From contig JAHLTZ010000001.1 in the NCBI GenBank assembly GCA_025786725.1, positions 868,001 through 932,000 on the forward strand: a DNA stretch of 64,000 bases, written 5' to 3'. This document shows, piece after piece, positions 828 through 59,531 of this stretch. The notes under the pieces were generated by a model. That model ran no database searches. It worked only from the letters and a program-made list of their open reading frames with translations, and had not been told where the DNA came from. Position 1 is the first letter of the stretch; every line of letters starts with the position of its first letter. Source of the DNA: Syncephalis fuscata S228. Its lineage: Eukaryota > Fungi > Zoopagomycota. The translations under genes and the position numbers were made by a program.

Positions 828-1013
828 TAACAAACCAGTATAAATAAAATTGATATTAATTATTACAATTCAAATTCGCTTAATTCACTTATTAGTTATT
901 ATGTAATAAAATACTTAATTAACTAGTTCAAATTATGACCATAGATTTTGTATGGTAAAGCATCTAGTAATTAACATTATACTAATACGATGCATCCGGT
1001 TATATTTATTGCA

Positions 1014-34096: not shown

Positions 34097-34253
34097 AAAA
34101 ATTGGAAAATGCATTGTTTTTAGTTTTAATTAGAAAAATACATTGTTTTAAAATTTACCATAATAAATTCTTCTTTTTTTAGTTTATTATAATAAATTTA
34201 AGAGCAATGTATTTTTATAATCAGAATTAAAAACGGTGTATTTTTCAAATTTT
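34097..34253. repeat. Fold-back inverted repeat (~72-bp imperfect arms, ~11-nt loop)
   Basis: aaaattggaaaatgcattgtttttagttttaattagaaaaatacattg...ataataaatt pairs with agtttattat...caatgtatttttataatcagaattaaaaacggtgtatttttcaaatttt. Confidence 0.7.
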
Positions 34254-34579
34254 CTACTATTAATGCGTATCATTAATTAATAGCAGTTTCACTTTTAAGA
34301 TTTTCACTCTATTACATCTAGTTTATTTATCTTAGCTTCATAAAGGCATTGCCGTAGATATTATAACATGAGACAAAATTAGTATATTTGTGGCTATTAA
34401 CGCATTATGGTTATAAGCATTTATAATGTTATATTATTTTTTTCATTCGTTGTCGCCTATCATTGCTCAACTTGCCTATTTTATGCTAAAAATAATAACA
34501 CGTGCTAGCCTTTCAATTGCGTACCCATTCGTCATCAGTATTCATTGCTGTTTCGTATCTATAACAATTATATCGCAAC

Positions 34580-35694
34580 ATGAGCTTATATTCTTTCAAT
34601 ATTCCTAAACGTCAGCTTGGCAAAAATGGCCCATTACTGCCGGCCATTGGACTGGGCTGCATGGGCATGTCTCCTGGATCCTATGGAAATAATAAAGTGT
34701 ACTCCAACATATCACTAGCAGACTTGCCAGTCGACGTAAACGACGAAACCACTGCATCGGCTCTGGCCACGCTTACTCGCGCATTTGAAGCTGGATGTAC
34801 CTTTTGGGATACGGCCGTGAGTAATATAACTTGTATACGTCACAATGGTACTAATTATCTACACTAGAATGCATATGGTTTTGGCCATAACGAAAAATTG
34901 ATTTCACATGTGTTAAAAAAGCATCGAGATCAAGTGTTTATTTGTACAAAGTTTGCCATTCGCATGTTTATGGATGGTCGCCGTACCGTCTGTGCCGAAC
35001 CAAGTTATATCCGCCAGTGCTGTGAAGAAAGTCTTGCTCGTCTTGGTGTAGACTGCATTGATTTGTATTACCAGCATCGTGTTGACCCCAATGTGCCAAT
35101 CGAAACGTCGGTTGGTGCTATGGCCGAGCTTGTACGTGAAGGTAAGGTGAAGTACATTGGCTTGTCAGAATGCTCGGCCGAAACGCTACGTCGTGCCCAT
35201 AAGGTTCATCCCATTGCAGCCGTGCAAGTCGAATATAGCCCATGGACTCGTGACATTGAAACAAATGGACTACTTGATGCCTGTAAAGAGCTCAATATAG
35301 CACTAGTTGCATACGCACCACTTGGCCGAGGCTTCTGACCGGCAATATCCGCACCGTAGATGATATTCCTCCTGGTGATCGTCGTCATTATATTCCACGT
35401 TTTGAAAAAGAAGCTATTGAAAAGAACCTAGCACTTGTTGATGCATTTCGTCGTATGGGCGAGAAAAAAGGATGCACTGCCAGTCAGCTATGTTTAGCAT
35501 GGGTGCTAAAACAATGGGATGGCATCTTTGTTATTCCTGGCACTAAGCGTGTCAAGTATCTGGAAGAAAATCTTAGTGCCAGTAATGTTGTAGTGACCGA
35601 TGAAGATGACAAGGAGCTGCGTGAATATATTGAAGACATTGGTGTTACAGGTGAAAGATACAATGAAGCAGGTTTGAATATGGTCAATATTTAA
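34580..35694 (+). pseudogene. Aldo-keto reductase copy A (YakC/AKR13-like), intron 34817-34867, 1-nt deletion at ~35333-35336 (pseudogene or assembly error)
   Basis: GLGCMGMS, WDTA|NAYG, CTKF, LYYQHRVD and GLSE. It reads ggcttctgacc where paralogs have ggctttctgacc or ggcttcttgacc. The downstream frame is otherwise intact. Confidence 0.85.
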
Positions 35695-36470
35695 TCTATT
35701 ACATTGTAACTTGTGTGCAATATAAATAAATGGGTTTATCATTGTAATTATGCCATTTAAGTATGAATATTCGATAATCTTCAATATGATATTAGCAAAG
35801 AACGTTAACTTTACCAATATTTTATTAGCATTATTTGTATTAATTACTAAATAACGAATCAGATAATATATTATTAAATAAAACAACAGTTACATCATAA
35901 TATGATTAGTATCATTTCTTTCTTCGTCAGCTCATTCCTTTCTATATTATCCTATGCTTTAATAAACACGCTTTATTAATAAAAGCACATGTCCATTATA
36001 ACTTTTTACAAAAGCGCACATACTATTATTCTATCACCAATATCTATACACTCTATTTGTTTATTTATTTTGTATCTATATCACTTTGCTAACCTGCAGT
36101 TACATTGCAGCATAAGTATAAAATAAACCAAGATAATAGATGTCGCTTAAATTAAATCATACCCAAAGATGATGATATAGAATATTAGGGCATAAAAATT
36201 ACTTTATTTTAGTTAAATTAAAACAAGTATAGCAACTATCCCGGTTGTTAATAAGTTATGGTGTTTATTTTAAAGTTATAGTATAATTTTTATTAGCCAG
36301 AGCTTGTTGTACATCATAATCAATGCCGTTGTGTAACCATAGCACTGTTTGCTCTACGTCATCAGTTCAGCGATGACGCGTTTATTGCTATTAAACAGAG
36401 GGCTATATGCCTTTATCTGCTCTTTTCATTCGTAACTTTGCACCTATTGATTGTTTAGCAAACCAGCATC

Positions 36471-36815
36471 ATGCCAGTACTTAACATTAACACCAATGTT
36501 CAAATAAAGGACGAGGAACAGCTGATGCAAGAGGCAACTGAGATTATATTTACTGAGCTGGACAAGCCAAAGAAATATATCCTAATTCATGTCAATTCAA
36601 ATCAAAAAATGCTTTTTGCCGGCACTCATGATCCGGCAGTCAATGCTCGCCTCCTTTCCTTGGGAACCGTAGAGCCTGAGGCAAACAAGCGAGTATCGGC
36701 TCGTCTTTGTGCAATCTTTGAAAAACATACCGGTGCCACTGGTGACCGTATGTACATCGAATTCACAGATCCTGGCTATGCCAACCTTGGATATAATCAT
36801 TCCACTTTTGGATAA
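36471..36815 (+). CDS. MIF / D-dopachrome tautomerase family protein
   Basis: 114 aa. M-P-x-L-x-I-x-T-N-V start with catalytic Pro1, LxKPxxYI, MLFAGTHDPA, DRMYIEF and NLGYNHSTF end. Confidence 0.9.
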   Translation: MPVLNINTNVQIKDEEQLMQEATEIIFTELDKPKKYILIHVNSNQKMLFAGTHDPAVNARLLSLGTVEPEANKRVSARLCAIFEKHTGATGDRMYIEFTDPGYANLGYNHSTFG

Positions 36816-37049
36816 ACTTTATTTGAACAATAAACTGTCCACTTGACCATCACACAAATATGGTTAATAATATAAAAGAAGGCCGAAGCATGACGTTGCT
36901 CAATATAAAAACAAAAATAAGCAACACTGGAAGGCAGTAATAGTTAACATGGTAAAAAAAAGCCTATGCCCTTTTTTAAAAGTTAGTATTATTAAAAATA
37001 AACACAGTGCATAATGTAAACAGCAACACTAACACTACATACCTAAATA

Positions 37050-38400
37050 TCTATGTAAGAATAACAGTTGATTAAATACTAAGCAGTTTGAAGTAAAAAT
37101 AAGCAAATATTTATTACATAGCAGTGCCAGTTGTCTTACCATAGTAAACAGCCGATTATAAGAGCGTACACGGCTATTTGTGCTATACCGTCTTTGTCCG
37201 CACAATAACACATAGTTCAATAAAACATAACAATGCTTACCTGTAACTTCAAAGAAACGGTAAATGCTTCAGATGTAGACTGATAGAACATAGCCAGAAA
37301 CTGACAAACAGCAAACCGCCACAAACATTGACACCAGTTACAGTACCGGCTCAGGACAATTAGTGCAATAATTAGAATGTAAATAAAGCACCGTACAAGC
37401 ACCGCTAGCTACATACTAAGCAGTATGCTATGGAAGACGCTGGCAATTAAACGACAGCATATACACCAATGTCGTTCATAGATTACAGAGCTGTAGCCGT
37501 TAGTGATAATGATCAAATAGCAAATTTGCTTAAATATACTACAGTCTACAAAGTTAACGTGTTAGATCTTGCATTAGTTGTTGCATTTGAAAACGCCAAT
37601 GTTTAGAAAGAAATGGTGTGAGCAGAATGTTAGGTAGTGGAATCAAACAAAGAAGGTACTTGGTAGAGAAGTACAGCGCATATAGCCATCACAGTCCTCG
37701 TATTGATAGCTGTGCACATACAGTAATAGCAACAGTAGCAACTCGCGCTGTTGTACTGGCGCTGAAGACTTACTTAGCGACTATACTAGCAGTTTGATCT
37801 ACTAATATTGGTGGTGTATGCATACAGCAGCTGTACCTGAAGACTGTGCTGGCTATATGCCGCCAGAATCACTGTATACGCTGTTTTTGCTAGAGAATGC
37901 CACCACAGATCGTACTGACAGCAGCTTGTACCGGCTCGACAGTAGTAGATCACACTGCCACTGTTGAAATAGTAAAGCTGTTGCTAGCTGACCTGTAGTG
38001 GCAATCTATAGCAAAACATAGCATATGCTTAACACAATATAAAAACAAGCCACAAAGGCACTTATTGTGTCAAAGAAGTTGTCAATACCAATAAGCAGAG
38101 TAAATAAAGTGATTTGCATAAATGTCAGATTGCAAAAGAGCAAGGCAAGAATGTAAATAGTATTTGTACTTAATTAGTATTAGGCAACTACTGATGCTAG
38201 CAAGGCAGCATATATAAAAGGTAAAAGTATATGTACTGGATACGTGCCGTCAAGTGTAAAGAAAGAGAAAGGACAGTGATGACGTAGATTATGTGCTGTA
38301 TTGTTAATATATGTGAAGTGATAATAGTGATGTCATTTGATACCAAACTACTCATTTTCATAGAACATGTTGTCAGTAAATAGTGAATATATTAAAAATA
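37050..38400 (-). pseudogene. Decayed intron-containing gene remnant / dispersed repeat, copy 1
   Basis: Minus-strand hydrophobic fragments (FIYILIIALIVLS; GIAQIAVYALIIGCLL) end at GTAAG donors but are broken by many stops. 37850-38300 aligns by eye with 51255-51660, and 38332-38400 with the reverse complement of 63838-63905. Confidence 0.4.
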
Positions 38401-38974
38401 GATGCTATTTAGTGTTAAATAGCATTTTTAGTCATATTATTTTAAAATTTGATACTATTGAATAATGAATTATCTATTGCTGAATTTCTGCATACTCAAA
38501 CTATTAGCTAAAGTAATTGATTTACGCTCTTGTTAATGTTTTTTGTTTACGTATATTATTTTGGAAAAGAACAGTGTGCTAAAAAATAATAACTAATAAT
38601 GCACAGCTTTGTAGAGTAAATACCTATTGCTCTTTACTTATCATACAATAAAGATAAAGTTTATACTGATTATTAATGATTACATTCCAGTTTTCAAATT
38701 ACGAATCTAATGTCAACAGCAATTTATACGTTATGGATAAAAAACGGATGCATTGAGCTACGCGAGTAGAAGTGAATATAGTTAATAAAGTCAAAGTGTT
38801 TAGTTCATTATTTATAAACACGTTTATAGGCGTATGCTTTAATTTGGTTATGCTTATGTTAACAAAGAACTCAATTAAGCAAATAATGCTTTAATGCAAA
38901 TATTAAATGGCCAGCGTTGTTTAAATTGCTATAATTTATTAATCGATGGCATATAAAGCCAAGACTAGAATAAA

Positions 38975-41900
38975 CTATCTGCGACGATAGCCACGATATC
39001 TTGAATTTCCATTCACTGGATTGCTAGATCCGTATGAACCATGTTGAGATGTTGGTGGTGGTGAGTATCCACCATATGGATAGGCTGGATAGCTAGGCAC
39101 GTATGGACTAGGCTGAGGTACTGGTGCTTGCGGATATCCGCTAGGTGGGTAGGATGGATAGCTAGGCGTATATGGCGGTACTGGTTTTTGTGCTGGCTTA
39201 GCTGGAACTGGCTTAGGCGGCTCTGGAGCTGGTACTGGCTTAGGCGGCTCTGGAGCTGGTACTGGCTTAGGCGGCTCTGGTGCTGGTACTGGTGGAGCTG
39301 GTGCTGGCTTAGGCGGCTCTGGTACTGGAGCTGATGGGGCTGGTACTGGCTTAGGCGGCTCTGGTGCTGGTACTGGTGGAGCTGGTGCTGGCTTAGGCGG
39401 CTCTGGTGCTGGTACTGGTGAAGCTGGTGCTGGCTTAGGCGGCTCTGATGCTGGTGCTGGCTTAGACGGCTCTGGTACTGGAGCTGGTGGAGCTGGTACT
39501 GGCTTAGGCGGCTCTGGTGCTGGAGCTGGTGGGGCTGGTGCTGGCTTAGGCGGCTCTGGTGCTGGAACTGGTGGAGCTGGAGCTGGCTTAGGCGGCTCTG
39601 GTACTGGAGCTGGTGGAACTGGTACTGGCTTAGGCGGCTCTGGTGCTGGAGCTGGTGGGGCTGGTACTGGCTTAGGCGGCTCTGGTGCTGGTACTGGTGG
39701 AGCTGGTGCTGGCTTAGGCGGCTCTGGTACTGGAGCTGATGGGGCTGGTACTGGCTTAGGCGGCTCTGGTGCTGGTACTGGTGGAGCTGGTGCTGGCTTA
39801 GGCGGCTCTGGTACTGGTGGAGCTGGTACTGGCTTAGACGGCTCTGGTGCTGGTACTGGTGGAGCTGGTGCTGGCTTAGGCGGCTCTGATGCTGGTGCTG
39901 GCTTAGACGGCTCTGGTACTGGAGCTGGTGGGGCTGGTACTGGCTTAGACGGCTCTGATGCTGGTACTGGTGGAGCTGGTGCTGGCTTAGGCGGCTCTGG
40001 TGCTGGTACTGGTGGAGCTGGTGCTGGCTTAGACGGCTCTGGTACTGGTGGAGCTGGTACTGGCTTAGACGGCTCTGGTGCTGGTACTGGTGGAGCTGGT
40101 GCTGGCTTAGGCGGCTCTGGTGCTGGTACTGGTGGAGCTGGTGCTGGCTTAGGCGGCTCTGGTGCTGGTACTGGTGAAGCTGGTGCTGGCTTAGGCGGCT
40201 CTGATGCTGGTGCTGGCTTAGACGGCTCTGGTACTGGAGCTGGTGGAGCTGGTGCTGGCTTAGGCGGCTCTGGTACTGGAGCTGGTGGAGCTGGTACTGG
40301 CTTAGACGGCTCTGGTACTGGAGCTGATGGGGCTGGTACTGGCTTAGGCGGCTCTGGTGCTGGTACTGGTGGAGCTGGTGCTGGCTTAGGCGGCTCTGGT
40401 GCTGGTACTGGTGAAGCTGGTGCTGGCTTAGGCGGCTCTGATGCTGGTGCTGGCTTAGACGGCTCTGGTACTGGAGCTGGTGGAGCTGGTACTGGCTTAG
40501 GCGGCTCTGGTGCTGGAGCTGATGGGGCTGGTACTGGCTTAGGCGGCTCTGGTGCTGGTACTGGTGGAGCTGGTGCTGGCTTAGGCGGCTCTGGTGCTGG
40601 TACTGGTGGAGCTGGTGCTGGCTTAGGCGGCTCTGATGCTGGTACTGGTGAAGCTGGTGCTGGCTTAGGCGGCTCTGATGCTGGTGCTGGCTTAGACGGC
40701 TCTGGTACTGGAGCTGGTGGAGCTGGTGCTGGCTTAGGCGGCTCTGGTACTGGAGCTGGTGGAGCTGGTACTGGCTTAGACGGCTCTGGTACTGGAGCTG
40801 ATGGGGCTGGTACTGGCTTAGGCGGCTCTGGTGCTGGTACTGGTGGAGCTGGTGCTGGCTTAGGTGGAACTGGTATTGGAGCTGGAACTGGCTTAGGTGG
40901 TTCTGGTACTGGTACTGGCTTAGGCGGTACTGGCTTAGGTGGAGCTGGTGCTGGTACTGGTGGAGCTGGTGCTGACTTAGGTGGTATTGGAGCTGGTGAA
41001 GCTGGTATTGGCTTAGGTGGTATTGGAGCTGGTGGAGCTGGTACTGGCTTAGGTGGTATTGGAGCTGGTGGAGCTGGTACTGGCTTAGGTGGAGCTGGTA
41101 TTGGAGCTGATGGAGCTGGTACTGGCTTAGGTGGTATTGGAGCTGGTGGAGCTGGTACTGGCTTAGGTGGAGCTGGTATTGGAGCTGATGGAGCTGGTAT
41201 TGGAGCTGGTGGAGCTGGTATTGGAGCTGGTGGAGCTGGAACTGGCTTAGGTGGTTCTGGTACTGGTACTGGCTTAGGCGGTACTGGCTTAGGTGGAGCT
41301 GGTACTGGAGCTGGTGGAGCTGGTGCTGGCTTAGGTGGTATTGGAGCTGGTGGAGCTGGAACTGGCTTAGGTGGAGCTGGTATTGGAGCTGGTGGAGCTG
41401 GTACTGGCTTAGGTGGAACTGGTATTGGAGCTGGTGGAGCTGGAACTGGCTTAGGTGGTTCTGGTACTGGTACTGGCTTAGGCGGTACTGGCTTAGGTGG
41501 AGCTGGTGCTGGTACTGGTGGAGCTGGTGCTGACTTAGGTGGTATTGGAGCTGGTGAAGCTGGTATTGGCTTAGGTGGTATTGGAGCTGGTGAAGCTGGT
41601 GCTGGCTTAGGTGGTATTGGAGCTGGTGGAGCTGGAACTGGCTTAGGTGGAGCTGGTATTGGAGCTGGTGGAGCTGGAACTGGCTTAGGTGGAGCTGGTG
41701 CTGGTACTGGTGGAGCTGGTGCTGACTTAGGTGGTATTGGAGCTGGTGAAGCTGGTATTGGCTTAGGTGGTATTGGAGCTGGTGGAGCTGGAACTGGCTT
41801 AGGTGGAGCTGGTACTGGAGCTGGCGGAGCTGGAACTGGCTTAGGTGGAGCTGGTATTGGCTTAGGTGGTGTTGGTGCTGGCTTAGGTGGTACTGGCACT

Positions 41901-42663
41901 GGAGCTGGAGCAGGCTTAGGTGGCGCTGGCACTGGTCTAGGTGGCGGCGGTGCTGGCCTTGGTGGGATTGGTTTAGGTGCCGGTGGATGATGTGGTGGTG
42001 GGGCAGGCCTGGATGGGGGAGGACGATGTGGATGTGGCGGTATTGGATTTTTTGAATGAGATGGAACTAGATGATGTAAAGCTGGTTTATGTTTATCATG
42101 ATCAGAAGTCAAGCTAGCAAAATTGACGCTATTTACGGCATCATTAGTTTCGTTAATATTTTCATCAAACTGCGTTTGCATAAAATTAGCATTTGTTTCG
42201 TCGTTTACTTCATCAATTAGTGTATTAACTTCTGACTGAGCACCATTATCGTCTGAAATATCACTTTTTAAATTAACGTGCTTGTTGGTTTGAATAGTTT
42301 TAGCATTTTCATCTAAATGGCTATGAGTTACACTGCTGTTATTTAGGTATATTCCTTACCAGTAGAACCATCGTTATTATCAAGATCTTTATTAGATTTC
42401 GGCGTATTATGTAATTCTCCGCTGATTTTTTTGCCATTTGGGCCTTCAATGGTCCAGAAAGTAACGTCGTCGTCCCTGTTTCCTTGTTGATTGTCAGGAA
42501 CGCTATTAGTTTTAAAATGCCATCCTAAAAAGGAAACATCAATATCTTTGGATTGGTTTGTTGATGTGTCTTGATTAGTAGGCGGTGCGCCTGAAACAGA
42601 TAAAACACTGTTTGTTGCCGCTGCAAGTAATGCAGCCGCAAATATTATACGCTTACTAAGCAT
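38975..42663 (-). CDS. Secreted Pro-rich repeat (extensin/HRGP-like) protein, 1213 aa. Intron 42359-42313
   Basis: Signal peptide [23 protein letters not shown] 47-nt GTAAGG..TTTAG intron joins the 106-aa and 1068-aa ORFs in frame. About 950 aa of PAPPKP/PEPPKP repeats, then a Tyr/Pro-rich and basic C-terminus. Confidence 0.85.
39195..41960 (-). repeat. Coding minisatellite of the Pro-rich protein
   Basis: Repeated ggcttaggcggctctggtgctggtactggtggagctgg and ggcttaggtggtattggagctggtggagctgg units. Confidence 0.95.
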
Positions 42664-45600
42664 AGCAAGCAGTAATTAAAATGTGACAGCTAAGTGATAA
42701 ATAGAATAAAGAATAATATATAGTTTCCAATATGGATAAAGATGTTGGGCCGTAAAATATTAGGTTGGAAGATTGTACGTATAGCTACACTCTTTAGACA
42801 CCTGGACTAAATTGGCATATCTATTTATTGTTGCAAGCTTTGGCATCAGCAAATCAATAGCTTTCATTGGCAATTCAAATACACTTGGCGATAAAACAAC
42901 ACAGGCCTATCTATTGGTTGTACACGTCGTAACTTCATAGAAAAAATTGTCAACTAATAATTCGTGTTGATACATTGAATCTATTATTGTCGAATATAGT
43001 AATACAAATCAATCGACTTTTTACGTTTTATACCTATAATAAATTTGTTTTATTTATATCCTAACGCTATTTATTATGTAAATGGAAAATAGCTATATAT
43101 TTAATTGTTTTTTAATAAAATACTTGGATTTCTGCTTATTTGTTTTATTGGTACTATGATAATTAAACATGTATTTCTTTATAACGCTATGAATCATTAA
43201 AAAGCATTGCCGAAATATTAAAGCTTGATTGTGCCGTAGCTTAGATTTTCCTTTCTAGAACGAAGAATGTTACAAAGACTACAGGCTTACACAAACAAAT
43301 CACCAGACGATAAAGGCCAATTTTTAAGGAGCCTTTTTGCTAAAGGCAATACCGGTATTGTTCAAGTTGTTGAAACAATAAATTAATTTTTCCTTTTTAA
43401 GACACTAATTAATGCCATATTAATTGAAGGATAGGCTAATTGCCGGCTTGTTCTGTCTTACAGATGCTAACAACACTTTGAATTCTTCAAACTAGCTATT
43501 TAATAAATACGTTACATTGTGATAATATGATATTAAATATAAATCTAATCTAATCAGCTAGACACAGGTGCGTGTTTTTTATAATGACTAAGCTTTGCTA
43601 ATTAATATTTTGTGTATGTCAGCTTGGTCAATAGCCAAGTTCATGTGTGTTCTACGAACTTTCATTCCAGCTATTTTTGCAACCAAATAAGTCTGCTTGT
43701 TCAAAAACCTGTTTCTTGGTCACTGATCTGAACAAGTATCTCGATTCGATGTATTTGTTGTCTATGAGTCAATTTAGTGAATACTTGGCAGAGGCATTAA
43801 CAACATAGTGGTAATATGGCTGGCCTAAATGATTGACATAGTCTATTATACTATCACATCTACTCAGGTGTTTCTATATACTGTTACCGTTTGGAAACTT
43901 ATACAATACTGCTTTACAGCATAATCAATGTTTGTGCTAATGGATGTTTACAAGTAGTGCTTTGCAATTGATACGCTCTAGCATATGGACTATGGCTTGC
44001 ATTTTTATTTTGTCTTGTATATTCAATTAGGCTGTTTATCCTAGCAGTCTAGCTACTGTAAAGTTAAAAGTCATAAAATATTGTGTTTATTTAACTGTAG
44101 CAAATGCTGGAAAGCAACTTTAGCATATCTGAGCCACAGCCATGCTATTGTGAAGCACATAATATTAAACGGCTCATGTGACATATTTTCTACTGAAATG
44201 TATGTTTGTAGCTGAGCCTTGAATAAATTAGATGATGTATCCAGACAGTTAAGCTATCAAGTTGGTAATATTGTGACGTGGCACCGTGTGTCCATCATGG
44301 CACGGATAAACAGTGCTGTAATAAAGCATTAGCACACTATTATTCAATAAACAATAATAATGCAATATATAAATGGGATTAGCATTAGATTTAATTGCAC
44401 CTGTTATATACAATAGTATGAACTAATATATAATAGACTAGATGGCGTGACATAAAATTGTACAAGGCATTAACAAATGGTAATTATTTAATGGAGCTAC
44501 TTCACTTTGACCCTCACATTTTTATTTATCTATTTCACCCCTCAACACTTTTAAATACAATTAAACATACACTCATCACTATAACATGTATAATATTGCA
44601 TCCAACACTAATCAATTCATGTGTAATTATCAATACAATAATGTAATTAAATATGCACATTACGGTATTAGTTGAAGTTGAAATAACATTTAATAAACTA
44701 AAAGGCTTTTTACACTAAATTGTTAAATATCTTTGCTGAAACGGTTTACAAGTATAAAAAGAATAAAATAATTGCGATTATTAAATATAGCTATTATAAT
44801 ATGCAAATGTGGTTCAAGTAAACAGAAACAAGATAGAAAAGAAATAGATCACATAACAGTTTGATGTACATTATGACAAACAGGCAGCAGAAGTAATGAG
44901 TAACGACATGAAATCGCGGTTATATGGCTTCTATTAATATTCGATCAATCTTTCTACACATGGCCAACAACAATAATAATCGGGTTCAAATGTTTCAAAA
45001 ATCAAATAGTATGTTACATTGTTTGTTCAAATTAATTTATTAATAGTTCAATAGAAAGTAGTATAACTATGTTGTGTATAACAATGGCATGACCTCAATT
45101 GAAACGAATTTTACTTTGGAACAGATGTGGGAGTCAAAGTACAATAAAATTAAAACATTGAAGTAGTAGTCACCACGACTGTTGCTATGATGCTATAAAC
45201 ATTTGCAACATTTTCACATGTTGTGCTATTATTAATGTTGTAGTTTTTACTATTCGCTATTTCTGCCGTGTTTAAAGAACAACACAAAGCATCAATTTGA
45301 CACAAAGAATACAGATTACTATCAAATTTAAAAATTACAAGATGCATATTATTTTGTATTATAGTGCTATTGAGTAAATGTAGTAACACTAATAAACATC
45401 TAATTATACGAAAAACACGAAAGAAAGGCTTGTTATTTTTTATTTTAGCAATAAAGATAATTAATTATATAGAAGCTTTCTGTATTTAAAACAATGTACC
45501 AGGAATAGCTTAGTATTTATTTTTTATATTGAAAGGTGAAAATAATTAAACAATGAGTATTACCAAATATTCTGATAATATCAGCATAATTTATACTATA

Positions 45601-45664
45601 ATTATGATATTATACAGACATGTCCTACATGTTTATAATGCCTACTTAATAATCTAAGTAACAT

Positions 45665-45830
45665 CCAATCTATTGAACATGATGGTGGGTGGTGAATAAC
45701 ATCAGTTATCAAATACTCATCACCATAGATTCATTATTCAGTATGCATATATACTCATTTGCCTATATCATGTTCATGGCATATTCGTGTTACTATATAT
45801 CATTTTAAAATGTAGTAACTACGCTCTACT
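45665..45830 (+). mobile_element. Partial diverged copy of the 5.0-5.47 kb MITE-like element (one arm plus interior)
   Basis: ccaatctattgaacatgatggtgggtggtgaataacatcagttatcaaatactcatcaccatagattcattattcagtatgcatatat resembles 5023-5110. Confidence 0.6.
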
Positions 45831-46116
45831 CAAAACTATTGTCCTTTTGTCGCTAGCTTTAGTTGTTATAAACTTTGCTTATTTCAGTTAGCTATCACCA
45901 CTATAACCTCAATATTTCTATTTATAGATTTTATTGTCTATCCATTCTACTGACACCATTATGATATATAATGCCCATAAGCTATTAATAAAAACTGTTT
46001 GTTTATTGTTAACTCTATTTTATAGAAAGTGCTACAATCTACACCTATAACAGCACAAGTACAACATACTTGTCTCCTTTAATTGCATTTTATCTTTATT
46101 ATTATTATTATACGTC

Positions 46117-49100
46117 ATGTGGCAGCCTGTCGAGCCATCTTCCACACAGGCCAATAGCGAAACAAAAACACTAGCGAAAGAGATTGTAGGCGCTGAAACA
46201 GACACACAAGCACTGAATGAGGCAGCCTTATTGCTGAAGGAGAGGAAAATCGATTCAGATGCCATAGCCATCGAACAATCAAAGGAACCAACTAGCACGA
46301 TTCACTCACCCAGAAGCAGCGAAAAGAATCAAACACCAAGAACCGCGGTGCGTATTCATAGACGATCGGAACCAGGAAGTCCAGGATCAAACCAGAGCAA
46401 TGTAGACGCGTCGCCATTGCAGCTACGCAGCAAAATACCGTCCGTTGCTGTTTTATCACCTTTATCGTCGCATGCCAATTCGTTTGATAAAACCGATATA
46501 CAAGCAAATACTACTACGTCAAAACAAGAGCCAGAAAATAGCGATATGCTTGAAATGACTGCAGAACTACTAGTTGATAGCAGTAAAAGTCCATTAATGC
46601 ATAATAATGTGCCTGATTTGCACCTACCAAGTACAGTTGATCTGGATGATACCAATAACCTTGAAACTACTGGTAAGTAATATAAGTTAATTACAATGAT
46701 AATACTTAAATTAGCCTAATTGTATTGACATTAGCATTGGATAAGGAAGCTGCTGATACTGGTGACATGCCTACTGCCAATGAGCTGGTCCACCATTTAC
46801 AATGGCCACAGCGTCATCTTTTTACCTTGATGGAAGAACGATCAAAAGATTTATCTAGCGTATGTTTAGAGCCGGCCCACGAACAAGATGCAGAACCATC
46901 CAATGATGCGGACCACCCATCGAGTAATTTAATTGATGAACAGTTGCCACCTTCTACTGTAGTGGCTATGGATCGTTACTTAACCAAATCCGAGGCCAAT
47001 TCATTTGTTGGTTCCGAACCATCTGTACTTGTTGAGGAGTCAACAACAAGTGTCATTATTGAAGAGTCTATCAGTCAATTTGGTTTGCTTAACAATTTCA
47101 ATAATCAAGTATATAATGATACCATTTCTGTTGAAAGTTCTCCAGATGTTAGATTAACAAGAAATGATGCAACAACACGCGATAAACCACACTATCTTGA
47201 ATTGCATACAACGCCAATACGCCAGCAGAATAATCAACGTGAAGCATCTTATATGTCGTTGCCACTACCACACTGGGACACGTCTCCTTTACACGAAGCA
47301 TCGGATAGCATACTTACTGGCTCACCTGCTCCACGTTTTGTATTGAAAAGAGGTACATCAGTAGAACATGAAGTGAATGATAGCATTAGTATTGGAGAGA
47401 TTATTTCTCATGAACCAACGTCAACGACTATGCTAGACAATAATATTACGGCAAAAAGTATTGTTAATCAGTCTTTAAAAGCAACTGAACCGACAACAAC
47501 AAGTCAGATAGCAGATGAGCCAACGAATCTACCAACCAACACTAAAGCGACTATTTCTAAAGTTAGGGAAACAAATGATCAGAATTTAATTAGTGTTAGC
47601 GCACAATATTCACCACAAGGTCTTGCCGCCTTTCTACTGCCACCAAGACAGTCTAGCGATATAGTGACAACATCAACAGACGTAGATGACATCAATGTAC
47701 CAGAACGGCCCAGCACAGTCACTTCAGGAGCACCTATGTCTGCAGCACGTACACCAGCTCGTCGGCCACTTTCTATGCCGGCATGGCAACCAGCATCAAT
47801 AGTGTCGACATCGTCTGAACGATCAACTAAAAAAGAAATAGCTAGTAATGTGTCGAATGTCACAGATAATTGTATTGGAACAACACCCTTGAGTAAACGG
47901 GGCAGTCCAGTTATTGATAATATCCGTAAGTCAGAGGATTTGTTTATTAACAACGATGCTCAGTTGGGTGGATCTAAATCTAATCCGACAACGGTATCAA
48001 CAACTGCATATGCTGCAAAACAACAAGACAGTCCATTAATGCGTACGCCATTGACATCGCCGCGTAAATCGTCGCGACCAACATCGTTAATTAATTATAG
48101 TGCGGGATCTCCATTATCAACTGGACTAGCAGAGGCACGTCTAGTAGGAATGTCTGACAGAAAGCAGCATTTGGCCCAGTTAACACGTAGAGCAAGTGCA
48201 CTTACAGCACGGCAGTCTACTGGTAGGTAGTTATTGACAGTGATAGACAGCCAACTAAATAACGCTATTTAATTAGCATCACAAGGATTGTTTATTAATT
48301 TGGAAGAGAATTCAACCGCATCAATAAATAAATCGGATCGTAGTAAGGCAGCAGAAGACAAGCCAATGTCAAAAGGTCAGAAAATATCCTGTATAGATAA
48401 AGACTGAAAACACCATCACCTGTAACCACTGGAGGTCCACCGGCAACTACAAATTGCACTATGGGATCAGATGCGATATTGGCATCCATACCGGCAATGT
48501 CATTGGACGAGTATTCGCCTCGATCAATAGCAGCATCGACACATTTTGCTGGAGAAAATACGGCAGATCAAACGGATACAACTACGCCTAGCGTATGGCC
48601 TTTAAAACACTACCGACAAACACCGGATAAATTATGGCGCACTGTTGCATCAGCATCTCTGGTAGATAATGCAATTCATACAACCGAAAATAGTGAACAG
48701 GACGATGATGAGGACACGGATGAAGAAGATGAACAGTTATTACGTGCGTCATCAGTGGCTAAAAACAATAATGTTCTACATGAACAGTTGCAACTGCAAT
48801 CACTAACTGCCATGTTATCGGATCGATTACCGTCTGAAGGATGGTCTACATTAACGGTATTGGATCTGTCGGATACATCTACACTAGAATCATTTAATGG
48901 ACTTGATATGTTATGTCCGGCACTTGAGGAATTAGTGGCGTATGTATTTGACTAGCTAGTGAGCTATAGTGATAAATACTAATAGACGGCTATAGACGAC
49001 GATGCAATCTTACTTCATTAAGAGGGTGCCAACAAGGATACAACGACTAAATGTTATGAGCAACCGGTAGGTAGATGGTATTATGAACAAGTAGAAACAT

Positions 49101-50766
49101 TAATACTGTAATTATAACAATCTAGTTTACGAGAAACGGATATCGTAGATTTACGTCATTTAACCGAGTTAACAGTACTTGAGCTATCTGACAACTATTT
49201 ACAAAAACTTATATGTAAGTGTGAAGAGACAAGCGCTATTTACACAATACATGTAACAAATATTAAATAATAGATTTTGGCGAATTAAGACAGCTACGGG
49301 ATCTACGTGCTGATAAAAACAAAATTAAAGAACTTGAGGATTTGTCGGCGACCTGTTTGGAACATTTAAGCTTACGAGGAAATCGGCTAATATTTGTTGA
49401 TTGTGCTCAACTACCCTGGTAAGTAACTGAATAAATAGTTTATTATAGCATGTGTTTGACTAATTGATTTGTAAAGTGCTTATATGAAGAATCTATTACT
49501 TAACAAAAATGCTATTGCTAAGGTGCAAAGCATCGGATTGCTTCAACAACTAAAAATTCTGAATCTTGGTTAGTAGCAAATCATGGTATAACACAGTATT
49601 AATGAACCTTTTAATTATTGTTATTATTATTAGATCACAATTTGTTATCGCATTTTGAAAGTACAACACCATTAGCCAGTCTACATACACTTCGATTGTC
49701 GCATAACCAATTACGTCATCTTCATGCAGGCTGGTTTCCTACTGTGAGTGTACTATACGCCGATTGTAATCTATTGCATAAAATAGACGGCTTGGCCATT
49801 TTATCTATGCTAGAAAGTTTTTCAGTGAGAGATCAGCAGCGTAACTGGTAAGCGATTTCAGCCTATTTGATTTATTATTATTGCACATTTTGTAACCTTT
49901 TACTATTTATTGGACAGGGAGATGAATTTCGATGCTTTGCCACCAGCACGCAATCTTTACCTATCAGGCAATCCGTTTCCTGATTTAATTCGCTGTTCGC
50001 GCCTAGACCTGAGCTTGAATTTCTTGAACTTAGTGGCTGTAGTGTAATTACACTGCCACACGCTTCACTATGGCCGAATATTCGGGTATTTAATCTAAAC
50101 TACAATCATTTACGCGATCTATCACCTCTTCACCGGCTACTTTCACTGCGTCGACTCATGTTAGTAGCCAATTCGGTAAATACGGTTGATGTGGTGGCGT
50201 GTGCAGTGCGTCGACTTCCTAAGCTACATGCGCTCGATTTACGACGCAATCCGGTGGCTGCATCGCTGTATGCACCACTTGTATCGACGACGGCCACCGT
50301 TTTATGTCTTTCACTGCTACCATATCAAGCGGATCTACAATGGCGACAAGCGGATCTACACTATCGAATGCATCTATCGGATTTGACGCTTTGTCGACGA
50401 GCCGCTTATCGGTCCACGGTTATTCGCTGTGCACCTGCTTGCTTGTCCGAACTTGATGGACAGCCAGTGGCGAATAACGAGCGCAGTGAAGCTGAAGAAA
50501 TGTTTCGCTGGATTCGTGATCAAGCTGCTCTGCCTGATGTATCGTCGTCTATACTATCGGTGGCACCGTCGATGCTACCGGGGAATGTAACCATTATTGA
50601 AGAAGTGGAAACAAAAGCTGAACCGCAATCAATGTTGTCGCCACGTAAAGAGACTACAGCTACTACTCGAACTGAGCCGCGAGTAGCGACCACTACGGCA
50701 CCATCAAGTGCACGTGCGCCGCGTACCATTAGCCTGGCTGATTTTGCGCTTGGTAACAAAGCTTAA
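46117..50766 (+). CDS. Leucine-rich repeat protein, Cdc11/Nud1 (SIN/MEN scaffold)-like; multi-exon, with three apparent 1-nt deletions
   Basis: A long disordered Ser/Thr-rich N-half is followed by many LRRs across short exons (LTVLELSDNYL, LRDLRADKNKI, LEHLSLRGNRL, LHTLRLSHNQL, IRVFNLNYNHL, LHALDLRRNPV) and an LRR cap (YRSTVIRCAPACLSELDGQ). The family call rests on architecture. Confidence 0.72.
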
Positions 50767-51254
50767 TCGGTATATAATAGTTGTAACTATGACGATGTAT
50801 CAACATTGTCAATGGTTATTGTATATTTAGTGCTCAATGCAAACTTGTTTAGATGCACTGTTGATTAGTTTATCAATACCAAATTATTATTTGGTATTAA
50901 ACAATAACGTATTAATTATTAGCTAAATACAAAACAGTGTCAATACAGTGATTATTATTATTATTATTAAATTTAACATCGTTTTTAGTATTAATTACAT
51001 AATATTGATAATTTATCTAATGGTGTTGTAGAAAAGGCTTTTGAAATATAAGTTATAAACACGTGGTAATTTATATGATCTTGCTTGTACTTGCTAACAA
51101 CATGCTTGATTGAATAAAATGTAACATTATTTACTTGACAATTTAAATGATGCGCTTTATTTGCAGAATTAGTAAAACATATTGCAAAGGAATGCACTGC
51201 AATAATTGATCATAGCCGTACACATACAACAGTAGCTAACACAATGATTATGAT

Positions 51255-51810
51255 GACCATATGCTGCCAAATCTGTTGTATGCTTTGGTTTGCCATAGAT
51301 TGTCACTGCAGATCGTACTAACAATAGTTTGTACAGTCTCAGTAGTAACAGACTGTACCACTACTGTTGAGATTGCACATACTTTTATTAGATGGCTTGC
51401 AATTGCAATCTGTAGTAAAAGCAAGTCAAAGATACACTTACCTTGCCAAAAAAACTGTTAATACTGATGATCAGAGTAAATAAGGTAATTACAAAAACAA
51501 TGCAAGAGAGTAATGTAAATAATGTTTGTACTTGACTATTAGTCAGCCAACTAATGGCACTATCTATATAGTATATATAGAGTGTACAAGTATATGCAAT
51601 GGATATATGTTGTCAAGTGTAAAGAAAGAGAAAGAGAGATGTGATGACGTAGATTGTGAGATGTGATCCCTGTCAGTCAATATTTATAAACAGCCAAGTT
51701 TAATTCATTGATAAATGGAGTGTAAATAATAAAAGTCAATCTACCCAACATGTCGGTACATCATAGAACAACAAGTGAAGCAATAGTGCATTAAGAATAA
51801 AGGTCATTTA
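51255..51810. repeat. Dispersed repeat, copy 2
   Basis: Shares cagatcgtact, gtcaagtgtaaagaaagagaaag..tgatgacgtagatt and other blocks with 37850-38300. 51711-51810 is a near-identical reverse complement of 63899-64000. Confidence 0.75.
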
Positions 51811-52211
51811 ATCATTAAACATAAGTTAATTTAAAAGTAAATAAATGATAATTGTATGCAAAATAATGTTTATTTTGTTAATAAATAAAATAATTTATAT
51901 ACTAGCTGTTCGCTTAGTATTAATACCACTAATATTGATAATTTCAATATATTAATAGTTTAGATGATAACAATTTATATTAGCATGCTTCATATGATGA
52001 AGGATTTGGTGATATATTTTAACCAGTAGTTAATCATTTGCCGTCTAGTTGGATATGTGATAGGAATATTGTTAGACAAAATTTTATTATAATAATTATC
52101 ATTATTATTTTTTAATATAGTATTACATAATATCAACAGCTCATATTTTAAAAATGTGACTACAATGACAACTATTTCTTCATATTAAACACAAACTAAA
52201 GTGCATTAAAT

Positions 52212-53322
52212 CTAAAGATTAAGTGCAGACATACCATCGGCATCGTAGCGATCGCCTACAACATTAATGCCTTCAATACATCCACGCAGCTCCTTGTCGT
52301 CTTCATCAGTTATTACAACGTTGTTGGCACCAAGATTTTCTTCCAGATACTTGACACGCTTAGTGCCAGGAATAACAAAGATGCCATTCCATTGTTTTAG
52401 CACCCATGCTAAACATAGTTGACCGGCAGTGCATCCTTTCTTCTCACCAATGCGACGGAATGCATCAACAAGTGCCAGGTTTTTTTCAATAGCTTCTTTT
52501 TCAAAACGTGGAATATAATGACGACGATCACCAGGAGGAATATCATCTACTGTACGAACTTTTCCGGTCAGAAAGCCTCGGCCAAGTGGTGCGTATGCAA
52601 CTAGTGCTATATTGAGCTCTTTACAGGCATCAAGTAGTCCATTTGTTTCAATGTCACGAGTCCATGGGCTATATTCGACTTGCACGGCTGCAATGGGATG
52701 AACCTTATGGGCACGACGTAGCGTTTCGGCCGAGCATTCTGACAGGCCAATGTACTTCACCTTGCCTTCACGTACAAGCTCGGCCATAGCACCAACCGAC
52801 GTTTCAATTGGCACATTGGGGTCAACACGGTGCTGGTAATACAAATCAATGCAGTCCACACCAAGACGAGCAAGACTTTCTTCACAGCATTGGCGGATAT
52901 AGCTTGGTTCGGCACAGATAGTAAACTTGGTCCCAGAAAAGTCATGGAAGCCAAATTTTGTACAAATAAACACTTGATCACGATGTTTTTTTAACACATG
53001 TGAAATCAATTTTTCGTTATGACCAAAGCCATAAAGATTCTAGTATAAATAATTAGTATTTTTATAATAATTGTAGTTAATAATTACTTACAGCAGTGTC
53101 CCACAAAATACATCCATCTTCAACTGCACGAGTAAGTGTGGCCAGAGCTGATGTTATATCTGCATTGTCTTCGTCAATAAGTATGTCTTTTGGGGACACA
53201 TTAGCCAATGTAGCTTTGTTTCCATAAAAACCGGGCGACATGCCCATACATCCTAGACCGATAGCTGGTAATATTGGGCCATTTTGGCCAAGCTGGCGCT
53301 TAACGATATTGAAAGAAGACAT
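52212..53322 (-). CDS. Aldo-keto reductase copy B (intron 53091-53040)
   Basis: Intact ORF after splicing. Catalytic D (WDTA), Y (NLYG), K (CTKF) and H (YQHR) are present. Confidence 0.95.
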
Positions 53323-53971
53323 GTTGGGTAGATACTATGGAATGTGTGACACTGGACCGATAATTGTAATGTGGATAATTGCAGCAATTTGCGGTTCTAT
53401 TTAAATGCTATAGCACGTCGCAACAAACCGGTAAAACCATTAATTACTAATTCATATATTAGTAATCAATGGTACATAAAAGCAAGCAATGTTTGACATA
53501 ATTAGACAAATACAAGAATTCGGCAAACCCATTACGTAGTATAGCGTTTAAGAATGGACTGTTTTTCTAACACATGAGTCATATCTTATTGTTTGAATCG
53601 GTTTTACCACATTTATTAAACAAGTCAGTGTCTGAGTTATAGCGCTTTAAACTGTACACACGTTTTGCCGCCTTTGGTGGGTAAAATAATGATTGGGGGT
53701 AACATTGATGCTAGTTTATTTCGTGTAACTGCTTAAGCTACAGCAATTGCTATTTGGTTTAAAGCCATATAGGTAGGACAAATAAGCATGTTTCTATTGA
53801 GATTAAACATTTTGAGTAGCTTTATTAAAGGTAATAAGCTAGTTAACAACACATTTACAACTTATCTCCAAATCCAAATAAAATTACTAGTGCGCTGTTG
53901 TGTTTTTAAACCCGTACATTTGTAATAATAATGATAATGTACAATATTTAATCAATAGCATAATAGTAATA
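53323..53971 (-). promoter_or_regulatory. Upstream region of AKR-B, duplicated in inverted orientation at 56143-56791
   Basis: About 650 bp of near-identical reverse complement; I noticed only one substitution. Confidence 0.85.
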
Positions 53972-54275
53972 AAGTATAGCAAATACAATTTACGGTTTAG
54001 AACGCAGCAGCGTGCAAGTTTTATATAATAATTTACCTTAGAGCATAAGCATTAAAGCACTATCTAATGGTGCAATACTGAGTTTTCATGCTAAAAAATA
54101 TGCCAAGCTTTATTTGCTATTATGCCTCATGAATTATTGGTTCATGTGCTATTTCATGTGACTTTACCGGTTTGTTGCGACGTGCTATAGCATTTAAATA
54201 GAACCGCAAATTGCTGCAATTATCCACATTACAATTATCGGTCCAGTGTCACACATTCCATAGTATCTACCCAAC

Positions 54276-55386
54276 ATGTCTTCTTTCAATATCGTTAAGC
54301 GCCAGCTTGGCCAAAATGGCCCAATATTACCAGCTATCGGTCTAGGATGTATGGGCATGTCGCCCGGTTTTTATGGGGATAACGCTGCATTGGGCAATAT
54401 GTCCCCAAAAGACTTACCAATTGACAAAGCCAATGCAGATATAGCATCAGGTCTAGCCACACTTACTTGTGCAGTTGAAGATGGATGTATTTTGTGGGAC
54501 ACTGCTGTAAGTAATTATTAATTACAATTATTATAAAAATACTAATTATTTATACTAGAATCTTTATGGCTTCGGTCATAACGAAAGACTAATTTCACAT
54601 GTGTTAAAAAAGCATCGTGATCAAGTGTTTATTTGTACAAAATTTGGCTTCCGTGAATTTGTTGAAACTAAGTTTACTATCTGTGCCGAACCAAGCTATA
54701 TCCGCCAGTGCTGTGAAGAAAGTCTTGCTCGTCTTGGTGTGGACTGCATTGATTTGTATTACCAGCACCGTGTTGACCCCAATGTGCCAATCGAAACGTC
54801 GGTTGGTGCTATGGCCGAGCTTGTACGTGAAGGCAAGGTGAAGTACATTGGCCTGTCAGAATGCTCGGCCGAAACGCTACGTCGTGCCCATAAGGTTCAT
54901 CCCATTGCAGCCGTGCAAGTCGAATATAGCCCATGGACTCGTGACATTGAAACAAATGGACTACTTGATGCCTGTAAAGAGCTCAATATAGCACTAGTTG
55001 CATACGCACCACTTGGCCGAGGCTTCTTGACCGGCAATATCCGTACCGTGGATGATCTACCAGCAAGTGATTGGCGACATTATAATCCTCGTTTCCAAGA
55101 AGAGGCATTGGCTAAGAACTTGGCACTCGTTGATGCATTAAACCGTATTGGCAAGAAGAAAGGATGCACTGCCGGTCAATTGTGTTTAGCATGGGTGCTA
55201 AAACAATGGAATGGCATCTTTGTTATTCCTGGCACTAAGCGTGTCAAGTATCTGGAAGAAAATCTTGGTGCCAACAATGTTGTAATAACTGATGAAGACG
55301 ACAAGGAGCTGCGTGGATGTATTGAAGGCATTAATGTTGTAGGCGATCGCTACGATGCCGATGGTATGTCTGCACTTAATCTTTAG
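54276..55386 (+). CDS. Aldo-keto reductase copy C (intron 54507-54558)
   Basis: Intact ORF after splicing, catalytic tetrad present. Confidence 0.95.
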
Positions 55387-56142
55387 ATTTAATGCACTTT
55401 AGTTTGTGTTTAATATGAAGAAATAGTTGTCATTGTAGTCACATTTTTAAAATATGAGCTGTTGATATCATATAGTATTATGTTAACAAATAACACTAGC
55501 AGTGATAAATGTCGGATGAGATTTTTGTTTGCCAATCTTTTTATTACAAATTTAACTAGTCATCATGTTTAATCATTGTTCGTCAATATATCATTAATTT
55601 ATTTATTATATAAATAATAATATGCGCTATAACAACACAATTATATAATTTTTTGTAACAAGTGGTAACAGCTTTCTTGTTACAATAAACCAAATGTTAG
55701 AAGTACGATAATATTAGTTACATCACCTTTATTCCATTTACATAAATAATAGTGGTATGTACCCGATAATCCCTGACGATTCCTTAATTATTTCCTGACA
55801 TGGAAATAACGCATTTAACGTGTTAACATAATACATTTACTAATATCTCGACTATGAGATGGTTAATAATATACACACTGATTAAAGGATTATTATCTAT
55901 TATATTCACTATATTGTATTCACGGTTGTTACAATTTTTGTCATCAGTGTCATTAGCATATTGATACTAGTAATATTATTACTATTATTACTATTTTTCA
56001 GCTTAATATACAAGCCAATGTATTTTATTAACACCAGATAAGCGTCTACAATCATTTATTATTTGTTATGTTTAGTTTTCAAGCACAATATTATATAACT
56101 GCACTATTATGCCCAAAACGTAGTAACTTTAGTGATAATTAC

Positions 56143-56791
56143 TATTACTATTATGCTATTGATTAAATATTGTACATTATCATTATTATTACAAATGTAC
56201 GGGTTTAAAAACACAACAGCGCACTAGTAATTTTATTTGGATTTGGAGATAAGTTGTAAATGTGTTGTTAACTAGCTTATTACCTTTAATAAAGCTACTC
56301 AAAATGTTTAATCTCAATAGAAACATGCTTATTTGTCCTACCTATATGGCTTTAAACCAAATAGCAATTGCTGTAGCTTAAGCAGTTACACGAAATAAAC
56401 TAGCATCAATGTTACCCCCAATCATTATTTTACCCACCAAAGGCGGCAAAACGTGTGTACAGTTTAAAGCGCTATAACTCAGGCACTGACTTGTTTAATA
56501 AATGTGGTAAAACCGATTCAAACAATAAGATATGACTCATGTGTTAGAAAAACAGTCCATTCTTAAACGCTATACTACGTAATGGGTTTGCCGAATTCTT
56601 GTATTTGTCTAATTATGTCAAACATTGCTTGCTTTTATGTACCATTGATTACTAATATATGAATTAGTAATTAATGGTTTTACCGGTTTGTTGCGACGTG
56701 CTATAGCATTTAAATAGAACCGCAAATTGCTGCAATTATCCACATTACAATTATCGGTCCAGTGTCACACATTCCATAGTATCTACCCAAC
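56143..56791 (+). promoter_or_regulatory. Upstream region of AKR-D, inverted duplicate of 53323-53971
   Basis: Direct sequence comparison. Confidence 0.85.
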
Positions 56792-57901
56792 ATGTCTTCT
56801 TTCAATATCGTTAAGCGCCAGCTTGGCCAAAATGGCCCAATATTACCAGCTATCGGTCTAGGATGTATGGGCATGTCGCCCGGTATCTACGGAAACAACA
56901 CTGCATTGGCCAATGTATCATTAGCAGATTTACCAGTCGACGTAAACGACGAAACCACTGCATCGGCTCTGGCCACGCTTACTCGCGCATTTGAAGCTGG
57001 ATGTACCTTTTGGGATACGGCCGTGAGTAATATAACTTATATACGTCACAATGGTACTAATTATCTACACTAGAATGCATATGGTTCTGGTCATAACGAA
57101 AAATTGATTTCACATGTGTTAAAAAAGCATCGTGATCAAGTGTTTATTTGTACAAAGTTTGCCATTCGCATGTATCCTGATGGCCGCCGTGCTGTATGTG
57201 CCGAACCAAGTTATATCCGCCAGTGCTGTGAAGAAAGTCTTGCTCGTCTTGGTGTGGACTGCATTGATTTGTATTACCAGCACCGTGTTGACCCCAATGT
57301 GCCAATTGAAACGTCGGTTGGTGCTATGGCCGAGCTTGTACGTGAAGGCAAGGTGAAGTACATTGGCCTGTCAGAATGCTCGGCCGAAACGCTACGTCGT
57401 GCCCATAAGGTTCATCCCATTGCAGCCGTGCAAGTCGAATATAGCCCATGGACTCGTGACATTGAAACAAATGGACTACTTGATGCCTGTAAAGAGCTCA
57501 ATATAGCACTAGTTGCATACGCACCACTTGGCCGAGGCTTTCTGACCGGCAATATTCGTACGGTAGATGATCTGCCAGCAGGCGACTGGCGTCGCCAAAA
57601 TCCTCGTTTCCAAGAAGAGGCATTGGCTAAGAACTTGGCACTCGTTGATGCATTCCGTCGCATTGGTGAGAAGAAAGGATGCACTGCCGGTCAATTGTGT
57701 TTAGCATGGGTGCTAAAACAATGGGATGGCATCTTTGTTATTCCTGGCACTAAGCGTGTCAAGTATCTGGAAGAAAATCTTGGTGCCAACAACGTTGTAA
57801 TAACTGATGAAGATGACAAGGAGCTGCGTGAATATATCGAAGACATTGGTGTTTTAGGTGATCGCTACGATGCTAATGGTATGTCCTCAGTTAATCTTTA
57901 A
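56792..57901 (+). CDS. Aldo-keto reductase copy D (intron 57023-57073)
   Basis: Intact ORF after splicing, catalytic tetrad present. Confidence 0.95.
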
Positions 57902-59030: not shown

Positions 59031-59531
59031 ATGAAGACATACATTCTCATTGCCACGTTCGCCCTTCTGGCCACCAACAGCCACAAGGCTGAATCGCTTG
59101 CCCTGTTCAAGGCACGACTAGACCCAATAAGAATGCTTTGTGATGTCAACGAGTACCGTGCTAAAAATGGCAGGAAGCCGCTAGGACTAGATGCCGATCT
59201 GAGCCGTTCAGCTACAAGACATAGCCAAATACAAGCTCAGCAAAACAAAATGAGTCACCACCTTCCTGGAGAACCTGACCTTGGTGGACGCATTAAAGCT
59301 TTAAAAGGAAGCTGGCTGGCATCAGCAGAGAATGTACATCAGGTAAAGGGCACTCAGCAAAAGGCCATGGAGGACTGGATTAAGTCTGATGGACACCGTA
59401 GAAATTTGCTTTCCGACGCTTACACACATGCCGGATTTGGTATGGTAGTCAGCAAGCAAGGTACACCATATTGGACTCAAGTGTTCAGCAACGATCCTAA
59501 AAAGAAACAGATTATTCCAAAGTGCAAATAA
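59031..59531 (+). CDS. Secreted CAP/SCP (PR-1 superfamily) protein, short bacterial-style domain
   Basis: Signal peptide, then VNEYRAKNGRKPL, HS..Q....MSH, AENV, WIKSDGHRRNLL, AGFG and YWTQVF. A probable 5'UTR intron lies at ~58949-59007. Confidence 0.9.
   Translation: MKTYILIATFALLATNSHKAESLALFKARLDPIRMLCDVNEYRAKNGRKPLGLDADLSRSATRHSQIQAQQNKMSHHLPGEPDLGGRIKALKGSWLASAENVHQVKGTQQKAMEDWIKSDGHRRNLLSDAYTHAGFGMVVSKQGTPYWTQVFSNDPKKKQIIPKCK

Follow-up and report, generated by a model that had tools for sequence, protein, structure and literature searches.

A mosaic array of four aldo-keto reductase genes in Syncephalis fuscata, probably shaped by concerted evolution around islands of old divergence

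How can four linked genes be almost identical across the middle of their proteins and at the same time group differently from one loop to the next? This question is raised by Syncephalis fuscata S228, a fungus that parasitises other fungi, in which a 64,000-nucleotide stretch of contig JAHLTZ010000001.1 (assembly GCA_025786725.1, positions 868,001 to 932,000; hereafter the window) holds four linked aldo-keto reductase (AKR) copies, A, B, C and D. A preliminary description of the window proposed a recombination-driven diversifier that shuffles specificity modules. In our analysis, concerted evolution with islands of divergence and a few whole-loop transfers is the best reading, with a probability of roughly 0.68. 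A literature search found no publication on this S. fuscata locus. The copies and their parts, in window positions, are as follows.

34580 to 35694, plus strand: AKR copy A; intron 34817-34867; in the assembly a 1-nt deletion at about 35333 breaks the frame, and the public model (KAI9599612.1, 328 aa) leaves out 26 residues there
52212 to 53322, minus strand: AKR copy B (KAI9599618.1, 352 aa); beta1-alpha1, beta3-alpha3 and tail blocks of derived type; loop B the same as in A
54276 to 55386, plus strand: AKR copy C (KAI9599619.1, 352 aa); 5' loops and tail as in B, loop B of ancestral type; within the invertible segment
56792 to 57901, plus strand: AKR copy D (KAI9599620.1, 352 aa); the intron, 57023-57073, is spliced in RNA; loops nearest to those of the single copies of sister species
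57197 to 57538, plus strand, in D (A 34991-35332, B 52916-52575, C 54682-55023): homogenised core, residues 119-232, 98.5-99.4% DNA identity to D
56882 to 56962, plus strand: divergence island L1, the beta1-alpha1 loop, residues 31-57, with a Syncephalis-specific insertion
57155 to 57196, plus strand: divergence island L3, the beta3-alpha3 hairpin, residues 105-118; A resembles D, B resembles C
35356 to 35421, plus strand, in A (B 52550-52485): loop-B tract, codons 241-262, A identical to B
34727 to 34879, plus strand, in A (D 56933-57085): near-identical A/D tract, codons 48-81 plus intron, 22 kb apart
55285 to 55445, plus strand: tract in which C equals B, C-tail and start of the 3' untranslated region (UTR)

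The four copies lie at the positions and on the strands first described, with pairwise DNA identities of 82-94% in a self-BLAST of the window and one intron of 51-52 nt each at the same position. For alignment, distances and comparison with fetched loci, coding sequences were joined locally and breaks were filled with N. The 89 informative coding sites support A+D (59), A+B (21) or A+C (9) and fall into only 16 runs, against a permutation mean of 45 and a minimum of 29 in 100,000 (p<1e-5). Significant identity tracts (A=B at codons 241-262, A=D at 48-81, B=C at 320-352, B=C=D at 1-31 and C=D at 253-267) connect five different copy pairs. Approximately unbiased (AU) tests select AD|BC for residues 31-118 and AB|CD for 233-267, with other trees rejected at p<3e-5. 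The segment trees thus reject each other, and a single duplication tree for the array is ruled out, as the preliminary description had argued. The mosaic of the four copies is real and beyond chance.

Most of the block pattern first reported was recovered, with some refinements. All four combinations of 5'-type and post-GRGF-loop type are present, and the loop after GMSPG, the intron and the hairpin after CTKF group A with D and B with C. The core from CAEPSYIR to PLGRGF, said to be identical in all copies, is protein-identical at residues 119-232 in B, C and D, in A only up to its break, and one core residue differs (A227S) in D of a second haplotype. About the first 30-31 codons are the same in B, C and D and distinct in A; the upstream sequence, also reported as common to the three, is shared over about 650 bp by B and D, over only about 113 bp by C, and over about 38 bp by C in the other haplotype. 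The loop after GRGF does unite A with B against C and D, although the A loop as originally quoted lies in another frame. In the tail, B and C are identical into the start of the 3' UTR, while D, previously placed with A, is intermediate: it differs from A at 9/24 residues and from B at 8/24, and AD|BC is only weakly preferred (p-AU 0.027).

What keeps the core uniform? Synonymous divergence (dS) among the copies is 0.02-0.08 in the core, against 0.70-0.82 to sister species. Since silent sites are homogenised among the copies relative to sister species, core uniformity comes from conversion and not from protein constraint; 18 family-variable core positions are identical in all copies. Homogenisation is also local, as an unlinked S. 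fuscata paralog on contig C361 is only 75% identical in the core. Between loop types, by comparison, dS reaches 0.57-0.68 in L1 (31-57), 0.54-0.77 in L3 (105-118) and 0.56-0.74 in loop B, or L7 (233-263), where values between species are 0.44-0.96. The edges are sharp: third-position divergence is 0.64 in L3 and 0.75 in L7 against 0.05-0.20 in the flanks, and L3 measures 42 bp between stretches of homogenised DNA. In all segment trees the S. fuscata copies cluster apart from two other species (bootstrap 80-100), and a single copy was seen at the locus in the sister species; the contig of S. pseudoplumigaleata, though short, includes a neighbouring gene common to the window. The C361 paralog (G000:C361:115858-116937) has one frameshift near residue 290, and another unlinked paralog (G000:C223:111930-113016), whose loop B is of D/C type, has decayed to a pseudogene.

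Is this exchange still going on? Diploidy is common in Zoopagomycota (PMC6784888, PMC9457484). Contig C152 represents a second haplotype that is 99.2% identical to the window from 56143 on and holds the start of B as well as C and D. The following features are needed for the comparison.

53230 to 53971, minus strand: left arm of a near-perfect inverted repeat, 742 bp, with the B promoter and first ~31 codons
56143 to 56884, plus strand: right arm, with the D promoter and first ~31 codons; 1 difference from the left arm in the window haplotype
53972 to 56142, no strand assigned: 2.17-kb segment holding C; opposite orientation in C152 (positions 848-3017)
54201 to 54275, plus strand: conversion tract of 75 bp
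53842 to 53898, no strand assigned: three arm-to-arm conversion single-nucleotide polymorphisms (SNPs)

At 13 of the 23 allelic differences in the C and D gene bodies, both bases are present in paralogs, where new mutation would give about 9% (P~1e-8). This leaves 10 differences over 2.2 kb, which fits the 0.5% heterozygosity of the flanks. The 75-bp tract in the 5' UTR of C is B/D-type in the window and has its own diverged version in C152. The SNPs at 53842, 53867 and 53898 are common to both arms within a haplotype and differ between haplotypes, and represent arm-to-arm conversion unless they were produced by polishing. In C, an independent second public sequencing run covers five of the sites that differ and agrees with C152 at each of them. 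The second haplotype therefore captures conversion in progress, and the earlier claim that ectopic conversion homogenises the core is borne out by both its uniform silent sites and the tracts that segregate between haplotypes. At the protein level the alleles of C differ by two residues where L3 ends and those of D by A227S, and the block combinations of C and D are unchanged between haplotypes. Residue 227 lies in the YSPLG motif (D ~57521) and is Ala in all four window copies; it is Ser in second-haplotype D, in sister species and in the homolog consensus.

The haplotypes also differ in arrangement. The segment with C is reversed in C152 between the 742-bp arms, and both junctions lie in one contig, with B-specific sequence beyond the left arm and D-specific sequence beyond the right. 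The inversion is probably neutral, because the flip alters no protein and C still adjoins an identical arm afterwards.

Which enzymes are being reshaped? A protein database search with exon 2 of D returned aldo/keto reductases of S. fuscata, and the copies carry the PF00248 domain (Pfam E 1e-74 to 1e-80). The structure model (predicted local distance difference test score, pLDDT, 92.5) shows a (beta/alpha)8 fold with AKRs as the top Foldseek matches, and the catalytic tetrad D75, Y80, K105 and H147 is invariant in 69 sequences and in all copies. The closest solved structure, by sequence (E 2e-67) and by fold (E 6e-30), is perakine reductase AKR13D1 (PDB 3UYI, 3V0S), a TIM barrel with the same tetrad; unlike it, the S. 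fuscata copies carry an insertion of about 20 residues in the beta1-alpha1 loop. AKR nomenclature assigns family membership at ≥40% identity to a named member; identity to perakine reductase, the best match by far and the only AKR13 member compared, is 37-38% over the structural alignment. The copies appear to be AKR13-like (perakine-reductase-like) and, judging from the family, are probably NADPH-dependent carbonyl reductases with differing substrate preferences. The insertion (D residues 31-57, 56882-56962) occurs in all Syncephalis copies, has an occupancy of 0.30 in 65 other homologs and shows the lowest pLDDT of the model.

The islands can be placed on this fold. Specificity elements described for AKRs are loops A, B and C, beta1-alpha1 and beta2-alpha2 (PMC10813097). 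On the model, L1 follows the first barrel strand, L3 is the hairpin after the strand with K105, the island after GRGF corresponds to loop B and the tail to loop C. Of the described elements, three therefore show strong variation, beta2-alpha2 has differences at residues 79 and 82, and loop A (148-154) does not vary; the L3 hairpin does not belong to the described set. The preliminary description had tied substrate specificity to the C-terminal-face loops and tail, and that face does carry most of the variable blocks (beta1-alpha1, beta3-alpha3, loop B and C-tail). Derived residues are unequally distributed: there are 29 in B and 9 in D (p=0.002), and still 22 and 7 when loop B is left out (p=0.008). 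Since 11/20 codons in 233-252 differ between C and D, mostly by silent changes, the loop B of C appears to be an old ancestral-type loop and not a fresh copy; a reciprocal A/C loop-B swap by double inversion is disfavoured by the same difference. Most simply, the derived loop B would have arisen in A and then been copied into B.

Taken together, these observations suggest the following history. A single ancestral AKR13-like gene would have duplicated in the S. fuscata lineage, giving linked copies whose divergence is old. Since then, short conversion tracts laid down by ordinary homologous recombination among the copies have kept most of the gene uniform, and old divergence persists in islands at active-site-face loops and gene ends. 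The islands are most likely kept by selection for two pockets, one ancestral (D-like) and one faster-evolved (B/C-like). A few transfers of whole islands (loop B, shared by A and B and probably copied from A; the promoter with the first 31 codons, shared by B and D; codons 48-81, shared by A and D; the tail, shared by B and C) would then have produced the mosaics, and one crossover in the identical B/D promoter arms would have inverted the C segment in one haplotype, as seen in the assembly. About 3-4 whole-block transfers suffice for the array, over a time that has nearly saturated silent sites.

Several points weigh against this reading. The islands coincide with family-wide variable positions (mean conservation 0.38 versus 0.76), and the nonsynonymous rate (dN) exceeds dS in no segment, being about equal to it only in L3 and the tail; relaxed constraint is therefore possible. 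The sample consists of two haplotypes of one strain, and the orientation of the C segment is known from one assembly. The simulation that bears on selection is a toy model that includes neither indels nor tract hot spots.

The strongest rival accepts conversion as real and takes the islands to be weakly constrained loops that diverged until they blocked it, with the copies serving as near-equivalent dosage duplicates. The family-wide variability of the islands fits this neutral heterology barrier, as does the N-terminal island, which is not an active-site loop and combines high dS (0.65) with low dN (0.10). It was modelled as purifying selection with family-derived constraint plus homology-dependent conversion in 540 runs. 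Diverged gene ends were common, showing that they can arise without selection; 3/540 runs produced both internal islands together with a uniform core, and 0/540 gave the full pattern, in which the flanks are uniform as well. A passive barrier also sits poorly with an island as short as L3 between homogenised DNA, with tracts that have crossed whole islands before and with the accelerated loops of the B/C lineage. The simulation favours, but does not prove, selection keeping two loop types, and we consider the neutral barrier unlikely.

Could recombination itself be favoured for making new loop combinations? In this proposal, C, weakly expressed, and A, if truly broken, would act as donors, and the state of A matters here. 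Copy A lacks one base at ~35333, so that the frame as assembled stops directly after GRGF, which the preliminary description did not see. The deletion is a homopolymer shortening. Similar 1-nt homopolymer indels separate the two contigs at 61710 and 62842, within one coding gene (61.4-63.4 kb), and are likely consensus errors; the S. plumigaleata ortholog has two more. Downstream of the break, residues 264-328 of A show dN 0.04 against dS 0.23-0.30, and the 3' part of A is under purifying selection. Since the shortening resembles indels elsewhere, A is present in the RNA run and dN/dS is low, a consensus error seems more likely than a pseudogene. In that run, A-, B- and D-specific contigs are all present, the D/A intron is spliced and the B and D contigs are exact matches; a low-depth A contig would fall below the 5% share threshold that was applied. 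C-specific exon-1 contigs have near-background depth, which is weak evidence, as contig depth cannot rank genes.

For such a diversifier speak the four L3 x L7 combinations, one per gene, the fact that B is a chimera and is transcribed, the low depth of C and the precedent of donor pseudogenes for major histocompatibility complex and resistance genes (PMC3924837). Homogenisation is nevertheless the dominant process: the block transfers are few for the time elapsed, and C and D keep the same combinations in both haplotypes. The purifying selection on the 3' part of A also argues against a donor role. No silent-cassette architecture was found, loop A is invariant and the islands lie where the family varies anyway. 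The label of a recombination-driven diversifier is thus too strong, and we regard this explanation as improbable. An equally improbable extension would make the array a natural loop-swap library, in which alternative active-site loops are maintained by selection and fresh combinations of them are favoured, arm inversion speeds exchange, and isolates differ, matched to host carbonyl defences.

Assembly chimeras, in which halves of two or three real genes were exchanged during assembly because of the near-identical 342-bp core, would find some encouragement in the 1-nt homopolymer indels in coding regions. They are very improbable, being contradicted at the level of contigs by separately assembled C152, which has the same C and D mosaics with SNPs of its own; the contigs are also Mb-scale, and copy-specific RNA contigs match B and D exactly. 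A programmed invertible switch (shufflon or phase variation) flipping C or promoters is the least credible explanation, for although both orientations occur in the assembly, the arms are 742-bp homologies and not short recombinase sites, orientation goes with haplotype-specific SNPs, C lies beside an identical arm after the flip, and a Pfam scan covering part of the exons found no recombinase in seven neighbouring open reading frames (ORFs).

The neighbourhood of the array has features of its own. Upstream of A, 2.8 kb (31762-34581) with a membrane-protein gene has a 73-78% identical copy at G000:C224:138035-140970 that ends exactly at the A start codon, with no AKR after it. An intronless MIF-family gene (36471-36815, plus strand; PF01187, E 4e-22) adjoins A, a proline-rich tandem-repeat ORF of >1000 aa lies at 38975-42181 (minus strand; haplotig C194 is ~1.3 kb longer across the repeat), and 59031-59531 (plus strand) encodes a CAP-domain protein (PF00188) with an apparent signal peptide. 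Two 97% identical inverted copies of a dispersed repeat lie around B-C-D (51268-51809, and 63899 to 437 past the window end); other dispersed repeats occupy 36940-38400 and ~44470-45150. A 16-mer of the former repeat (51738-51753) was compared with the B/C/D start context and rejected, its local score of 44 lying within shuffles (maximum 50).

In summary, the array adds a clean case to an evolutionary process that is already known, and reveals neither a new mechanism nor a diversity-generating machine. Its value is that a single compact and well-resolved locus displays conversion tracts, homogenisation of the arms and an inversion when the two haplotypes of the genome are compared. The islands also mark out which residues merit tests for substrate specificity, and as the four copies are natural chimeras with an identical core, the idea that a peak of divergence marks specificity is easily testable.

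Several known systems can be compared with the array. Cassette diversifiers such as VSG, pilE/pilS, vlsE and chicken Ig, with shufflons as a separate class, likewise swap variable segments on a constant framework by recombination. The cassette systems rely on one expression site, silent donors and one-way transfer, whereas the AKR array has no single expression site or silent cassette array, with A, B and D all in the RNA run, and a low rate of exchange. Shufflons pair a linked recombinase with short crossover sites; at this locus the seven ORFs gave no recombinase match and the arms are long. Palindromes, for example on the Y chromosome, show arm-to-arm conversion and isomerising inversion, and the AKR arms are similarly more alike within than between haplotypes, with the spacer in both orientations, but they measure only 742 bp and consist of two gene promoters.

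The closest parallels are cases of concerted evolution with peaks of divergence, including human red/green opsin, RHD/RHCE and yeast heat-shock paralogs (PMC3924837), where linked paralogs are also homogenised by conversion and old differences survive in short stretches at sites presumed to set specificity. The AKR array differs from these in having four copies, three lineages and several islands. In the GOT1p1/p2 genes of Tigriopus californicus, rare conversion of a divergent block has produced novel chimeric proteins (PMC3728101). Both systems involve metabolic enzyme paralogs with divergence islands, chimeras made by block conversion and tracts that segregate as polymorphism, to which the S. 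fuscata locus, sampled as two haplotypes, adds a fungal case with an inversion.

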